Shown here in pieces: positions 35,901 to 46,793 of a stretch of 64,000 nt of DNA. The DNA comes from Anaeramoeba ignava BMAN (lineage: Eukaryota > Protista > Anaeramoebae), in assembly GCA_028826165.1 (NCBI GenBank), contig JAPDFW010000088.1:186001-250000 (forward strand). The letters run 5' to 3'. Within the stretch, counting starts at the first letter, position 1; the number at the start of each line of letters is the position of its first letter. Below the pieces are notes generated by a model. It ran no database searches, had not been told where the DNA came from, and was given only the letters and a program-made list of their open reading frames with translations. Position numbers and translations under genes: made by a program.

Positions 35901-38900
35901 CACATATAAAGGCTGAAAACGGAGATTTGCGCATGAAAAGCATCACTTTAGCATTAATGGTTCGTCGTGTTTTAAAGGCAAATAAAGACATCAATTTTCT
36001 TGATGATAGAGACTATTATGGAAATAAACGGTTGGAACTTACTGGTCCTTTACTTGCCATTCTGTTTGATGATTTGTTCAAGAAATTCAATACTGAGTTG
36101 TCTCGTATTGCTGATGCTTCTTTATCCAAAAGAAACTTGGCTGCTCAGTTTGATATTGTTAAGTCTATTCGTATTGATACAATTACTAATGGTTTGGTTA
36201 GAGCTATTGCAACCGGTAATTGGACTCTGAAAAGATTTAAAATGGCAAGAGCTGGGATTACTCAAGTTTTATCTCGTTTATCTTACATTTCTTGTTTGGG
36301 TAAAAAAATTTCCAAAAAAAAAAAAATTTCAAATCATTTCAAATTAAATTCAAATTTAAATTAAAAAAAAAAGGAATGGTAACTAGAATCTCTTCACAAT
36401 TTGAAAAAACAAGAAAAATAAGTGGTCCAAGATCTCTACAAACAAGTCAGTTCGGGATTTTGTGTTGCTCCAAAGATACATCAATTTTAATGGATGATAA
36501 AATAAACACATGCTTTATAGATGATCTTTATTACAATCAAAAAAAAGACATTTCAATAATCACAGTAAACCCAAAATCCCTTGAAGAAAAAACATCCAAA
36601 ATCACGGAAAAGCAGCATTTTTATATCCATTCGTTAAAACAAAAACTATTCACAGTTAAAACGGTTACTGATAGAGAAATTTGTGTAACAGAAGATCATC
36701 CATTTCTCACAAAAAGGGGATTTGTCCAAGCCCAGCATTTAACTCACAATGATTGTGTTTGTATTAGACACACTTTGGAAAATCTTTCGAAAACTCAAAA
36801 CAAAACACATTTCGCTATCACTTCTGAAAAACAAATGCAAATCCAATTTCCAAATATTAACTTGAATTTGATAATCCAAAAACTTGATCAAATTAAATTG
36901 CTTCCTTTGGATAGTCAAAATGAAAAATTATCCATTTTAACAAGATTATTGGGAACTTTAATCTCCCGCGGAAATATCATATCGAAACAATTTAACCTAA
37001 AAATAAACCAACAAGTCGATCAAAATGATATCCATTTCATTTTTTGCATGGATTCAAGTCAAGATGCCTCTCAATTAATATCCGATTGCAAATCAATTGG
37101 ATTTTCAGATTCAATTTGGATCAAAGAAAAGGAAAAATCGAAAAATTTTCAACGAAGTTCCAACATCATTTGCAAAAATAACGCCTTGATTTATCTTTTA
37201 TTATCTCTTTTACATCCATTGGATATTATAAATATTCAGCAGAAAAATTCGCAATTTGCACAAATACCGAAATGGATTTTAGAATCAAGCAAGTTAATTA
37301 AAAGAGAATGGCTTTCGAGCGTTCATGGCTATTTTGTGGAAAGTGATCTGGTTCAAAATGGGATATTCAAAAGAAATTGTGCAAGCCAAAGTTTTGCGAA
37401 AAATTTCATCTTACAACAAATACTTCTTTTCAGAGAATTTGGGATTGAAACAACAGAAGAAATGTATTCATCAAATTTATTATTTCTTCCAAAAGATTCT
37501 TTCTTAAATTACTGGAAAAAAATTGGTTTCCGTTATTGCTTCTTTGCAGAACAGAATGCGAGAATAACGGGAGAGTTTTTGCTTTATTATAGACATTTAA
37601 AAAGCAAGAGTGAAGTCACAGAAGAAAAAGCAATTGAAAAATTCCGTTTAAATTTTAAATTTGAAAACGGGATGATTTTTGTCCCCGTTGACAGCATATC
37701 TCCTGAAACAAAGGTGAAGGAGGTTTATGATCTAACAACACAAAGCATCAATCACACATTTGTTGCAAATGGGTTTGTGACGCATAATTGCCCTTCTGAC
37801 ACTCCTGAGGGCGAGAGTTGCGGACTTGTGAAAAATCTTGCGCTTCTTTCTCACATCACAACAGACTCTGAAGAAGAGCCTGTGTTTAGAGCAGCCCTTA
37901 TGCTAGGCATTGAAGAAGTTGATTTTCTTTCGGGAGAAGAATTATCATCAGGAGAAGCAACTGTAATCTTTCTTAATGGGCGTATAATTGGGATACATCG
38001 AAAACCGCTTATTTTTATATCGCAATTTCGCATTTTGAGAAGATGGGCTCAAATTGCCGAATTTGTTTCAATTTTCTTCAACGAGAAGAAGAACTTTATC
38101 GAGATATCATGTGATGGAGGAAGATTATGCCGTCCTCTTATCATAGTTGATAAAAACGGAAAGCCAAGAATCACAAAGGAGCATATTCAACAGTTGTCAC
38201 AACCACTTGAAAATATTGAAGATCGCCAGAACTTTTTTGGCAAAGTGAAATATTCGAAATCAATATTCAAATATTTTCTTTCGAATGGGATACTTGAATA
38301 TTTGGATGTGAATGAAGAAAGTAATTGCAATATTGCTCTTTATGAAAACTTAATAATTCCTGGTGTAACAACTCATCTTGAAATTGAACCATTGACTATT
38401 CTTGGGATTTGTGCAGGAATCATCCCTTTTCCTCATCATAATCAATCTCCTAGAAACACTTATCAATGCGCTATGGGCAAGCAAGCTATGAGTATTTTGG
38501 CGGAAAATGAATTGACTCGTGTTGATTCCGCTCTTTATTATTTGTGTTATCCTCAAAAGCCTTTAGTAAGAACTAAGGCTTCCGATTTATTTAGATTTGA
38601 TCGTTTACCTGCTGGTCAGAATGCGATGATTGCTGTTATGAGTTATTCTGGTAGAAAATCAAAAATTTAATTTAGAATCTTAATCAAAAATTTAAATCAA
38701 AAATTTAATTTAAAATCAAAAATTAATTTAAAATCAAAAATTTAAATTAAAATCAAAAATTAAATTAAAAATTTAATTTAAAATCAAAAATTTAAAATCA
38801 AAAATTTAATTTAAAATTTAATTTAAAATTTAATTTAAAATCAAAAATTAAGGTTATGATATCGAAGATGCAGTCATTTTAAATAAATCTTCTTTGGATC

Positions 38901-41412
38901 TCGGTTACGGTCGTTGTATGATTTATAGAAGATATAGTGCACAAATATCACAATATCCAAATCAATCATTCGATAAATTGGTTTCACCATCAGAACTAGA
39001 GCTACAAAGAGGAATCAAATTTAAATTACTTGATGAAGATGGAATTTGTCAACCAGGATTGAAAATATCAAATGGACAAGTAATGTTCAACAAACAAGTC
39101 CCAAAAAGTACAACAGACACTATTGTAAATGTTCAAAAAATTGAACACAAATCATCTCCAGTTATTTACAAATCAACCGAAGGAGTTATTGATAGAGTCA
39201 TCTTGACAAACAATAAATCAACACAATTATTAGTTAAATCTGTAATTAGAAGCACAAGAAGACCTGAATTGGGAGATAAATTCTGTTACGATCCAAAAAC
39301 TCAAATTCTCACAGAAAAAATAATGGTTGATTCCCTTCAAAAATTAAATTATTCCCATAAAGTCGCTACTTTGGTTGATTTTGAAAACATCTTTTTATCA
39401 ACATCTATTCGCATTTTCAAATATAATCATTTCGGATTAATGTATTTTCTTCGAAATAATGCTGTCGATCAATTGGTCACTTTGAATCATAAAATATTCG
39501 CCAAAATCCCAACAAAAACACATTTTGATTTGGAAAATATTGAAGATGTTTTCGGATTGGAAAAATGTAGAGTTTAAAAACAGCTCAAAATTTAAACTCA
39601 TCTCAAATTAACTTTTAAATTAGACGGAATCATTCAATCACAAAATTTCAAAAGTTGGATCATTTTCTTTGCTTTTTGGATTCAATCTTTTGTTTCTTCT
39701 CAAAACAAAAGGATGAAAAAATTGATAATTAATTTAAATTATTCGGAATCAATCCGCAAATTATTTTTGTCAACTTGTCAAAAACTTGATTTGAAAATCA
39801 ACAACGAATTTGGAAAAAAGGAAATTATTATTGAAAATGGAAAGTTATTCAAATATTTTAAATCATTAAGAAATGAAAAATGGAAACAATTCCCAAAAAT
39901 CCCAAATTGGATTTGGAAACTAAACACTGAATATTCTCAACTTCTTTTAAAAACAATACTTAAACTTGAAGAACATAAAACTGATGATAATTATACTAAC
40001 AAATTTAGAAAAAGCAAAGAGCATTGGAGCTTCAAAACACAGAACAAAATGTTTCTAAATTTTCTTCAGCAATTATCTCTGCATTCAGAATTATCAGCAG
40101 ATATTGAAAAAAGGAAGGAAAAAAAGGAAAAAATTTACAATATCAAAATTTTCATTGGATCAAGCATTGGATTGAAATCACTTGAAAAAACGGAGAATCA
40201 AAAAGAAAGAGAAGAGGGATTAATTGAGTATTCAGGGAAAGTTTATTCATGCGAAACAACAAGCGGGGTTATTTATGTGAGAAGAAAAGGAAAATCTTTC
40301 TGGGGAGGCAACTCAAGTCGACATGGACAGAAGGGAGTTTGCGGCTTGATTGTTGAGAAGGAAGATCTGCCTTTCTCAGAAAACTGGAGTAGTTCGGATA
40401 TGATCATGAATCCCCATGGTTTTCCTAGTCGAATGACAGTTGGGAAAATGATAGAATTGTTGGGCTCAAAATGTGCACTTTGTGATGGCAATTTGAGAGA
40501 TGGAACAGTTTTTTCAGGAAATAGAAGTCTTGATTTAATGAACGTACTCATTGAATATGGATACTCGTTTTCTGGGGGAAGGATGTTCTTTATTCAGGCG
40601 TTAATGGATTGCCTCTTTCTGCTTATATTTTCTTTTGGTCCTGTTTATTATCAAAAATTAAAGCATATGGTTATGGATAAGATATTTGCACGTTCAAAGT
40701 ATTTTTAAGAACCTTTTTCAATTGGAAAAATCCTCAAAAGAAAATCCTCTTCATTTTTGATGTGGATTATTTATTGGTTTTGATTTTTGAAATATTTATT
40801 TTTGTTATTTTTTCTTTCTTGATTTTAGTATGGGACCTCGAACAGCCTTAACTAGACAACCAACAGAGGGGAGAGCAAGAGGTGGTGGTTTGCGATTAGG
40901 TGAGATGGAGAGAGATTGTTTAGTTGGATATGGATCAAGTTTACTTTTGCAAGAACGATTAATGTATTCTTCTGATTTATTTATTGTTACTGTTTGTGGA
41001 GTAAGTAATAAATTTTTATCCGATTTTCAAATCAATAATTTTAATTTTAATTTTAATTTTAATTTTAATTTTAATTTTAATTTTAATTTTAATTTTAATT
41101 TTAATTTTTGAATTAAATTTTAATTTTAATTTTAATATTAATTTTAATTTTAATTTTAATTTTTGAATTAAATTTTAATTTTAATTTTAATTTTAATTTT
41201 AATTTTAATTTTAATTTAAGAAATGTGGATCTTTGGGTTATGATGGTTGGTGTCCATATTGTAAATCTTATGAAAATTGTACCAAACTTGAAATGCCTTA
41301 TGCTTGCAAATTATTATTTCAAGAACTTCAATCAATGAATATTGCTCCAAAATTAAAATTAACTGATTTAAATGACGTATTTGATTTAAATCAACCAAAT
41401 GAAGTTAAATAG
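33000..41412 (+). CDS. RPC2: RNA polymerase III second-largest subunit, containing two inteins
   Basis: Exons 33000-33299, 34447-34760, 35569-36299, 36374-38650, 38853-~40698, 40829-41000 and 41221-41412. VEEKWKLLP...[11 protein letters not shown] is RPC2-type. Also [83 protein letters not shown] and [16 protein letters not shown]. Confidence 0.97.
36463..37788 (+). mobile_element. Intein 1 in RPC2 (442 aa, degenerate LAGLIDADG region)
   Basis: In-frame insertion splitting QFGIL|CPSDTPEG. Starts CCSKDTSIL; block B TEDHPFLT; ends [22 protein letters not shown] followed by Cys+1. Endonuclease remnants [27 protein letters not shown] and KIGFRYC. Confidence 0.96.
39284..40312 (+). mobile_element. 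Intein 2 in RPC2 (~343 aa, ends Gly-Asn, Ser+1; internal indels in this assembly)
   Basis: Insertion splitting ELGDKF|SSRHGQKG. Starts [10 protein letters not shown]; block B VTLNHKIF; ends [28 protein letters not shown]. The length of 1029 nt keeps the frame overall, but there is a stop at 39575 among compensating indels. Confidence 0.93.
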
Positions 41413-42163: not shown

Positions 42164-44808
42164 ATGACAAATATTCACGAAGCTGTCCAAAATTCTGATT
42201 CTAAATTAGTTCTTCAATTACTTGATAAAGGAGAAGATATTAATAAAAAAACTGAAGTAAAAAAAAAAAAAAAAAACTTATTTTTATCAAAATTTTGTTT
42301 TCTTAAATTAAATTTTTTAAAAAATAAATTTATTTAGAATGTAAAATAAAAAATTTAAATAAAATTCCCAAAAAAAAATTTCATTAAAAATTCTAAATAA
42401 AATTTTACTTCAAAAAGCGAGTAATTTTTAAATAAAATTTTATTTTCATTAATAAATTTTATTTAAAAAAAAATTCATTTCAAAATAATTTGATGTTTCT
42501 ATTTTATTTTATAAAGCAACTTACACCTTTACATCTTGCCTGTTCATTAGGAAATACTAAAATGGCAAAATTATTAATTGAACATGGAGCTGAAGTTAAT
42601 TCAAAAAATGTAAAAAATCAAAATGAATCAAAATCATTTAAAACAAAAATTTCTTTTTAAATTATTTTCCATTTTAGAAAGTAAAAAAATAATAAAATTT
42701 AATTTGATTTTATTTGATTTTTATTTAATTTAATTCAATTTAATTCAATTCAAAAAGCATGTAAATTTTTTAATCATTTTTCCAAATAAATTTTTCAACT
42801 GTAAATATTAATAAATAATAACTTACAGAATAGAACACCGTTACATTATGCTTGTCAAGCAAATGCTGTTGCATCACTTATTCAATTATTACTTGATTCA
42901 GGAGCTGATATTAATTCCCGAGATGTTAATATTCAAATATAAAAAAAATTTGGCAATTAAAAATATTGAAAAGAAAGAAAAATATTTTTTTTTTTAGAAT
43001 GTAAACTTTAATCTTTCATTTTTAAAAGATAGAAATTAAATTCAAAATGATAATTTCAATCCAAATATTTAGAAAGTAAAACAATTTTTTCTTGATTTGG
43101 AAATTATTTGATATTTAATCCAAAAAAAAATATCAAATAATTTTTTTTATTAGGATGATACTCCTCTTCATTTTGCTTGTTTTAATAAATTAAATGAAGA
43201 AAGTATGAAGGCTTTATTGAGTTGCAAACCTTCTCTTAATATTACAAATGTAGAAACATTTTAAAAAAAAAAAAAGAAAAATTTGAAATTTTAATAAAAT
43301 TTAAAAATTAACAAAAAAAAATTCAAAGAAAGTAAAATTAAAAATAAATTCAATTTGTAAAACAGATGTTAAAAATAATTTACTGGTAATGAAATAGAAA
43401 GTAAAATATAAATTTAATTTTAAAAATCAATCATTTTCATCATATATTCATTTTGGAAACAAAAATATATTTTTGATAAATATAATAGAATTATACTCCT
43501 TTAGATTGTGCAATTAAAAAAATAGCGCAAAAAGAAGTAATAGAAATGCTAAAATTGGCTGGAGCAAAAACAAAAGTAAAATGAATATTTTTATTTTTAT
43601 TTTTATTTTTAAGTTTAAGTTTAAATTTAAATTTAAATTTTTAGAATGTAGCAAATTCCGATTTCCAAAGTTTATTTAATGAAATTACGCAAGCAATGAA
43701 AAAGAAGCAATTATTAGTAACTTATATTGATACAATTAATGTATTGATTGATATTCCAAAAAAAAATTAGAATAATTGAAACAATTTATAGACATTTTGA
43801 AAAATTTTCAATTTTGAATTTTGAAAAAAAAAACAATTTAAAAAATCAAGAATTTCAAAGAGCAAATTGTGGATTCTCTTGTTGAAAATGAAGGATTTAC
43901 AAATAATTTGGTTCATCATTCACTGTTAAGGAAATCATATGAGGATTGCCAAGCAATTTGTCATTGGTTTTATGATTGGTATCAAAGTGGAACATCAAAA
44001 TTACAAATATTTACAATTAAATACTTCCCGATTTTAGTGTGGAAATTCTTATATTTTTATACGCATTCATCAATCCCACAAGCAAAGCAAAAACAACAAA
44101 TTACTGAAGGAGATCTTCAGAAATTAGCATCAATACAAGCGTTTCTTTTGTCAGTTTTTTATTCCGAAATTGAATCAAAGGAAAAAAGAGTTTTTCATCC
44201 AGTTTCTCTTGAAATTCCTTCTGTTTTCCATAAGCCTTTTGCTCAAAAAGTACAAAAATTAACTGAATCAAGTTTGCAAAAGCATGATTTCCAAGAGCAA
44301 CAAAGAAAATTAGTTTATATTGAAAATATTCCAATGATAAAAAGTTTTTCCACTTTGAATTCTGCACTTTTGCAAAAAGTTTTACTTTCAAAAATTTAAT
44401 CAATATCATTCCGAAATGCCAATTAATTCTCTCCAAAATTATTGCGCAATTTGTGCAAGAATTGCAACAATTGGTTCGGAAAAAGCATTTGATATTGATC
44501 AAGAAACTGTCACAAAGCAAATCCATCAAATTTCACAAGAAAAATGGGTTGAATATATGCTTTATTATCCAGAATATCATGAAAAAGAAAAAAAGATTAA
44601 AATTGAAAATGAAATTAAATTCTATCTTTCAAATGAATTGTTTCAAGAAATGTTATCAGGAATTATGCTTTGTTTTAGTCGTTCTCAAGATTTAATTAAT
44701 TCAGCAAAATTATCACTTTCTTTAATACATTATCGAGCTGTTTATGATTTAATTCCTGAAGTTTTATTAACAACAAATAGCATGATGAAAATTTCTGAAA
44801 ATATTTAA
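42164..44808 (+). CDS. Ankyrin-repeat protein (5 repeats, with 3-nt micro-exons), probably fused to a hyccin/FAM126 domain
   Basis: Ankyrin exons 42164-42256, 42517-42609, 42829-42924, 43154-43249 and 43489-43575 (TPLH motifs); linker exon 43645-43740; last exon 43851-44808 with one indel near 44392. That exon has AICHWFYDWYQSG...KYFPILVW...SLEIPSVFHKP...SLQNYCAICARIATIG...IHYRAVYDLIPEVLLTTNSM, matching hyccin family motifs. Confidence 0.8.
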
Positions 44809-44910: not shown

Positions 44911-46793
44911 ATGTCATTGCAAAATGCTTTAAAATCAGTTCAACTCAAAAAACAAACTCAACAAAATTCAACAGAAAATAATTTAAATGGATTTTTTACA
45001 GAACAAGAATTAAGAGATGGACAAAAACAAGTTTTAGAAGTTAATATTGAAAATTGGATTGAATTATTAGAAAGCAAAAATTTAACTTTTCCAACTAAAT
45101 TTGTTTCCATTTCAATTCAAGAAGCAAAATCATTAAAAGAATGTTGTGAACAACAAAAAAAATATGGAAAAATTGAAGAAAATAAATTAAGTGAATTGAA
45201 TGATTTGAAAAAAAAACTTAATCAAGAAATCAAAGATTTGCTTTCGAATTCCAAATTTAATCAAGATGGTATTTTTATGAAAATGTCTTCAAGAAGTGCT
45301 AAAGATGCTATTGAATTTCATCCTAATTTTCCAATATTTTACAAAAATCAACTTCTTGATTTGAAAAAACCTTTTAAAGATATTTCAGAAAATGAAAAGC
45401 TATTTGCTTTAATTGAAGCTAGTAAAAATTGTTTGAAAGTTAAAAATGCTGATGATATTATTTTCTTAGTTACTCATAGTGATAGAATTTGGATGGATAT
45501 GAGTATTGCATTAGAAAATATTGATATTTTTAACGAAAGTTTTGTTTTGAGAACTTGGTTTGATATTGATGCTGATCTTGAGGTTGATTTATTTCAAAAA
45601 TATTTCAAAAATATTTCAAAAATATTTTAATAATATTTCAATAATATTTCAATAATATTTTAATAATATTTATTTCAATATTTATTTTCAATATTTATTT
45701 TAATAATATTTATTTCAATACTTATTTCAATAATATTTATTTTAATAATATTTATTTCATTATTATTTATTTCAATAATATTTCAATAATATTTATTTTA
45801 ATAATATTTATTTTAATAATATTTATTTCAAAAATATTTATTTCATTATTTATTTCAATAAAATTTATTTCAATAATATTTCAAAAATATTTCAAAAATA
45901 TTTCAAAAATATTTCAATAATATTTCAATAATATTTCAATAATATTTATTTCAATATTTATTTTAATAATATTTATTTTAATAATATTTATTTCAATACT
46001 TATTTCAATAATATTTATTTTTAATAATATTTCAAAAATATTTCAAAAATATTTCAATAATATTTATTTCAATATTTATTTTCAATATTTATTTCTCATT
46101 ATTATTTTAATAATATTTCAATAATATTTATTTCAATATTTATTTTAATAATATTTCTTTCAATAATATTTATTTTAATAATATTTATTTCATTATTATT
46201 TATTTCAATAATATTTCAAAAATATTTATTTCAATAATATTTATTTCAATAATATTTCAATAATATTTTAATAATATTTCAATAATATTTTAATAATATT
46301 TCAATAATATTTTAATAATATTTCAATAATATTTATTTTAATATTTATTTCAATAATATCTATTTTAATAATATTTATTTTATTATTTTAATATTATTTA
46401 AAAATAGTTTAGAGGTTATGTTTTTAATAATAATCTTAATGCTCTTTCTCAATATTTTCAATACTTCTCTTCTCCAAGACTTGTTGAACAAAAAGAAGAA
46501 ATCCAAAAAATTATTTTAAATTTTTTCGAAAATGAAGTCAAACCTTGTTTATCAACAAAATTTACCAATTATGTTATTGATTTTTGTATTGCAAAAGAAC
46601 CAAAAATCAACCTTTTGTTATTGAATTAAATGCATTCCATTTTTCTGATACTTGTTTATTTAATTGGGCAAAAGATCAAGAACTTTTTAAAAATGGACCT
46701 TTTGAATTTAGAATAACAGAAAAACCAAGATCTGAGCAAAAAGCTGAATTAGAAAAATCTTGGAAAGAAATTAATTGAAACAGTTAAAATTTA
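44911..46793 (+). CDS. CDC123-like / R2K-clade ATP-grasp protein
   Basis: Exons 44911-45582 and 46408-~46793: IENWIELL...TFPTKF...FMKMSSRSAKDA...SDRIWMDM...VLRTW...EFRGYVFNNNLNALSQY...VIDF...VIELNAF...CLFNW. One indel near 46585. Confidence 0.8.

Follow-up and report, generated by a model that had tools for sequence, protein, structure and literature searches.

Single-codon exons as the very probable source of loop-tip residues in an ankyrin–hyccin gene of Anaeramoeba ignava

Are the triplets enclosed by paired splice-site dinucleotides between the ankyrin exons of a gene of the anaerobic amoeba Anaeramoeba ignava BMAN themselves exons, each a single codon long, or are they incidental to the removal of larger introns? 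The question arises from a gene on contig C89, which carries the 64,000-nt stretch of DNA analyzed here (the window, C89:186001–250000). Each gap between ankyrin exons was originally predicted to hold two AG/NNN/GT cassettes, read as single-codon exons for the residues at the tip of the β-hairpin. All eight cassettes lie at the predicted positions (8/8; Table 1), dividing each gap into three introns of 66–96 nt as proposed, and the resulting twelve introns over four gaps (81, 77, 96, 68, 77, 68, 73, 72, 78, 79, 66, and 88 nt) are all in phase 0, again as predicted. Residue register, genome-wide distribution and the layout of other genes point to the loop-tip residues between the ankyrin repeats being very probably encoded by separate 3-nt exons.

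Table 1. Exons and putative microexons of the ankyrin–hyccin gene, in window coordinates.
Feature	Position	Strand	Basis or remark
Exon 1, ATG, N-cap ankyrin repeat, 31 codons	42164..42256	+	Weak Pfam Ank match; NCBI model
Putative microexon 1, 3 nt, Asn	42338..42340	+	Splice-site anatomy
Putative microexon 2, 3 nt, Arg	42418..42420	+	Splice-site anatomy
Large exon 2, ankyrin repeat, 31 codons	42517..42609	+	Matches PF00023 positions 3-32
Putative microexon 3, 3 nt, Lys	42678..42680	+	Splice-site anatomy
Putative microexon 4, 3 nt, His	42758..42760	+	Splice-site anatomy
Large exon 3, ankyrin repeat, 32 codons	42829..42924	+	Pfam Ank match
Putative microexon 5, 3 nt, Asn	42998..43000	+	Also kept in second gene copy
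Putative microexon 6, 3 nt, Lys	43073..43075	+	Cassette also kept in second gene copy
Large exon 4, ankyrin repeat, 32 codons	43154..43249	+	Pfam Ank match
Putative microexon 7, 3 nt, Lys	43329..43331	+	Splice-site anatomy
Putative microexon 8, 3 nt, Lys	43398..43400	+	Splice-site anatomy
Large exon 5, C-cap ankyrin repeat, 29 codons	43489..43575	+	Donor at 43576; NCBI model
Exon 6, linker, 32 codons	43645..43740	+	NCBI model
Last exon, hyccin/FAM126 domain (PF09790)	43851..44808	+	Pfam match; NCBI model

The gene was first thought to end at its fifth ankyrin repeat, which is wrong: the donor that closes this repeat leads, as in the NCBI models, to the linker exon and to a last exon that matches the Pfam Hyccin profile (66.8 and 43.9 bits, cut-off 25) and the structure chains of human FAM126A (E 4e-9). 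The interval 43741–43850, considered as a stretch of frameshift errors, was rejected as such and is an intron in the NCBI model. Large exons 2, 3, and 4 match PF00023 with 41.2, 34.8, and 21.6 bits (cut-off 21.1), and between exons 2 and 3 precisely two positions of the profile are left without a match. The predicted product is a fusion of five ankyrin repeats to a hyccin/FAM126 domain. Hyccin/FAM126 is a subunit of the PI4KIII-alpha complex and binds TTC7. The domain resembles its known counterparts in profile and structure matches and differs from them in its placement behind five ankyrin repeats, an architecture that was found nowhere else in searches not built to prove absence. The NCBI models (KAJ5071463.1, 369 aa, and KAJ5071482.1, 505 aa) join the five ankyrin exons directly and omit all eight codons, much as gene finders had been expected to do; with these codons the protein would measure 513 aa instead of 505. 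Relative to the 505-aa model, the reading frame of the window copy slips at homopolymer runs around 44370–44392. This slip is probably an assembly error and splits the NCBI model into 369 + 130 aa, while the 505-aa model is intact.

The second copy of the gene lies inverted on the same contig (C89:284938–286208, minus strand), 57 kb away and 97% identical in DNA, and the neighbors of the ankyrin–hyccin gene also seem to be duplicated there. Elsewhere in the window, positions 36376–38670 (plus strand) hold a gene for an RNA polymerase second-largest subunit with an intein (PF14890), and a motif pattern near 38894–40708 suggests a second one; inteins are abundant in Anaeramoeba (PMC10710043). 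Downstream, a CDC123/D123-like gene (44911–46793, plus strand) contains a long, repetitive AT-rich intron of ~820 nt.

All eight cassettes are preceded by HAG and followed by GTAA, and cassettes 2–8 combine GTAA donors with TAG or AAG acceptors that equal or surpass the splice sites of the large exons. At 3 nt, they fall within the 27–30 nt limit set for microexons, have a canonical acceptor and donor on both sides, and are flanked by introns of spliceable size (66–96 nt, against a published mode of 76 nt). The genome paper, in which microexons are unmentioned, reports 32,108 introns with a modal length of 76 nt and 8% GC (PMC11550330); the GC content of the twelve introns here is 7–17%. In gaps 1 and 2, nearly every AG and GT is used by a cassette or by a flanking splice site. 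With the AG and GT counts of each gap kept, the probability of at least two AG-N3-GT matches is 5.5e-4, 3.5e-4, 8.9e-4, and 5.3e-3 for the four gaps, and their product gives a joint chance of ~1e-12, before any correction for the choice of this locus. A coding signature is likewise present, with the domain restored and stops avoided, and similar cassettes recur elsewhere: a sister Ank-BTB gene has them at the same positions, and the second gene copy keeps cassette pair 3, which is weak as conservation between copies only 3% diverged.

The ankyrin register was reported to depend on the cassettes, and recounting gives the same figures: junctions 2–4 have seven residues with the cassettes and five without them, and junction 1 has six, seven, or eight. 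The last result leaves the choice between one and both codons undecided at junction 1, where inclusion of both would produce a loop of eight residues, a rarer length (7%). In the intronless ankyrin paralogs of the same genome, the Asn-to-TPLH distance is 7 in 154 of 167 repeats, 8 in 12, and 11 in one, and none of the 167 has a distance of 5 or 6. Among public ankyrin repeats, the distance is 7 in 548/607 and 5 in 0/607, and a five-residue loop is hence absent from all 774 control repeats (167 paralogous and 607 public). The residues contributed by the cassettes occupy loop positions 4–5, where variation among the paralogs is greatest (2.75 and 3.49 bits) and which correspond to positions 2–3 of the ankyrin D-x-x-G β-turn. 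These turn positions are the ones randomized in designed ankyrin (DARPin) libraries (PMC4308713). The likeness to the ankyrin repeat/DARPin consensus DxxGxTPLH (PMC4308713) lies in the microexon codons falling on the library-randomized positions 2 and 3, and the comparison holds no evidence that the loops of this gene vary within a cell or a population.

The pattern extends well beyond this locus. A scan of the genome (42,843,398 bp, 147 contigs) with a loose pair pattern returned 1327 matches at a spacer of 3 nt and 172 at 4 nt, some of the loose-pattern matches being minisatellites. For loose patterns the reversed-pattern control carries no information, and other spacer lengths were therefore taken as controls. 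Under a strict pattern, 394 paired cassettes with a 3-nt spacer are spread over many contigs (reversed-pattern control, 47), against 20 pairs with a 2-nt spacer, all within one 27-bp minisatellite, and none genome-wide with a spacer of 0 or 6 nt. Furthermore, TAA or TAG is the first triplet in 0 of the 394 strict pairs. A pair spacer confined to 3 nt, together with the avoidance of TAA and TAG, makes sense only if the spacer is translated.

Individual genes illustrate the range of these arrangements. The Ank-BTB gene (C1:697131–700204, minus strand) has one exon per repeat. At two of its junctions the same two loop residues lie on 3+3-nt exons, while three further junctions place both on a single 6-nt exon. 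In the interval C1:409318–413129 (minus strand), 32 single-codon cassettes occur in runs, with stop codons in 0/32, separated by introns of ~73 nt that are 84% identical to one another; the cassettes spell a low-complexity stretch rich in R/N/Y/D/P/Q, and two longer AT-rich gaps break the runs. Many 3-nt cassettes are also seen at C1:942 kb and 1058–1073 kb (minus strand), with triplets such as ATT, ATG, ATA, TGG, GGG, and TTG, which may represent phase-1 exons of an Asp-rich (FG-GAP-like) repeat or phase-0 hydrophobic codons. Besides its microexon-rich ankyrin genes, the same genome has numerous long ones that lack introns (245 Ank_2 matches), and two very different architectures thus coexist within one family.

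Several other readings of the cassettes have to be weighed against this evidence. Practically no credence can be given to an origin by chance in AT-rich DNA, from satellite repeats, or through an assembly artifact: although some loose-pattern matches are minisatellites and the assembly does have homopolymer errors, the joint chance of ~1e-12, the spread of 394 strict pairs over many contigs against clean controls, and the same layout in the second copy and in an unrelated sister gene all speak against it. The cassettes might instead act as stepping stones for the recursive or nested removal of a ~230-nt intron, with the triplets lost and the loops as short as annotated. The public models do skip the cassettes, and these are spaced at the preferred intron length, which stepwise removal would require. 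However, the zero-length AG/GT ratchet pairs by which recursive splicing is recognized occur nowhere in the genome under the strict pattern, the paired spacer is exclusively 3 nt and avoids TAA and TAG, and the five-residue loop that would result has no counterpart among the 774 control repeats, making this explanation very improbable.

Skipping of real microexons deserves closer attention, given that the original prediction invoked it as a means of diversifying the binding surface. In that scenario, the microexons would often be left out, singly or together, yielding ankyrin surfaces with varied hairpin lengths in the manner of schistosome micro-exon genes. Several features are compatible with it: with all introns in phase 0 and all cassettes 3 nt long, skipping keeps the frame, the cassettes sit at positions randomized in DARPin libraries (PMC4308713), and junction 1 attains the canonical seven residues if just one codon of its pair is used. 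Skipping, however, deletes residues without substituting them, and loops of five or six residues are found in 0/167 paralogous repeats; all cassette donors are GTAA and match the large-exon donors in strength, and the host is a near-identical two-copy hyccin fusion and not a hypervariable family. Diversification by skipping is hence left unsupported, and frequent skipping is rated as quite unlikely. A broader proposal, in which single-codon exons form a system whose ligand-contact loop codons may be skipped, used alternatively, or exchanged singly by recombination in the flanking introns to generate diverse binding surfaces in repeat proteins, possibly with splicing tuned to 3 nt, is also regarded as unlikely.

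The reading preferred here is that the cassettes are normally included 3-nt exons, and that the short introns are each removed in turn to leave an mRNA encoding a normal ankyrin array fused to hyccin; on sequence evidence, this is the likely explanation. Of the original prediction, the part that assigns the β-hairpin tip residues to single-codon exons is strongly supported by register, 3-nt exclusivity, lack of TAA and TAG, and the 6-nt equivalents, and the part concerning diversification is not. Counting against inclusion is the direct joining of the large exons in the NCBI models, which come from a project with RNA-seq; read aligners are known to miss such tiny exons (PMC8831610). Each microexon would supply one of the two residues at positions 2–3 of the β-turn. 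Through intron definition, the major spliceosome would recognize the two ends of each AT-rich GT-AG intron of ~75 nt as a pair, a step suggested by intron size and by general knowledge of short-intron genomes, and the introns would be removed one after another. With introns defined across themselves, exon size should hardly matter, and a 3-nt exon would pose no steric problem. This would amount to an extreme form of gene architecture and not to a regulated switch.

As to origin, introns may have piled up at adjacent codon boundaries of a tolerant loop, probably through duplication of an intron or intron-plus-codon unit. The 84% identity among the introns at C1:409–413 kb suggests tandem duplication of an intron-plus-codon unit and would provide a young example of this process. 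The introns of the ankyrin–hyccin gene are mutually 56% identical in AT-rich DNA (best z 2.6), with no clear copies of one another, and a duplication origin is here either old or unproven. Tolerance of intron-gain intermediates by the loop is our guess as to why the cassette pairs are exclusively 3 nt and cluster at repeat loops.

A single-exon phmmer search and a search of the ESM Atlas returned generic ankyrins only (long ones in the former case), the ankyrin–hyccin protein is not among the matches of profile searches with exons 3 and 5 as queries, owing to ranking and to a greater length than was first assumed, and no relatives of the gene were found in metagenomes. The AlphaFold model of the annotated form, from which the eight codons are absent, shows helix-loop-helix units (pLDDT 76) and, as the only form modeled, does not discriminate between inclusion and skipping. 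None of the A. ignava transcript proteins from EukProt, which are present in the protein collection, clusters with the models of this gene. Read run X1, the only run that contains the stretch, has 0.24 of its words, close to the exonic fraction of 0.21–0.28, which fits a transcriptome and is silent on cassette inclusion.

If confirmed, these observations would describe a eukaryote in which parts of the proteins are encoded by exons of a single codon each, with hundreds to more than 1000 such exons, a situation unreported in the literature searched, which likewise yielded no paper linking microexons to Anaeramoeba. Many public A. ignava protein models would then lack binding-loop residues, and the published count of 32,108 introns would be too low. 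The genome would also offer a test bed for the minimum exon size under intron definition, for intron gain, and for the reasons why introns gather at the variable loops of repeat proteins.

Known systems share some of these features. The 90-bp exon arrays of Tetrahymena leucine-rich repeat (LRR) genes (Xiong et al., 2019, PMC6564038) also show one exon per repeat, uniform phase, and duplication of an exon–intron unit in an AT-rich protist, but they lack single-codon exons, are in phase 2 instead of 0, and encode LRR and not ankyrin repeats. The micro-exon genes of Schistosoma mansoni (MEG; bioRxiv 10.1101/2023.06.21.545858) resemble the A. ignava gene in having many consecutive, frame-keeping tiny exons, which are symmetric here as well (all 3 nt, phase 0). 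In MEG, however, exons are mostly of 15 nt, introns span 0.1–5 kb, and the products are secreted and alternatively spliced, whereas the A. ignava exons are of 3 nt, separated by introns of ~75 nt, and placed inside a folded repeat domain in a protein whose model has no N-terminal signal. MEG coding sequences consist mostly of micro-exons; here, microexons would provide 8 of ~513 codons, all the introns around them are shorter than 100 nt, and the protein starts with an ankyrin cap. Lastly, microexons of 1–15 nt occur in plants and animals, where they are missed by annotation and often in frame (Yu et al., 2022, PMC8831610), and single 3-bp exons are documented in MAP4K5 (PMC8632122) and Drosophila homothorax (PMC7392893). 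The likeness to these lies in tiny, unannotated coding exons flanked by GT-AG introns, adjacent ones being known. Plant and animal microexons, however, are scattered, one or two per gene and of mixed sizes (9 nt being the commonest in flowering plants), while the putative microexons of A. ignava are almost exclusively tandem 3-nt exons, found once in each protein repeat at constant positions of the structure, with up to 32 in a gene.
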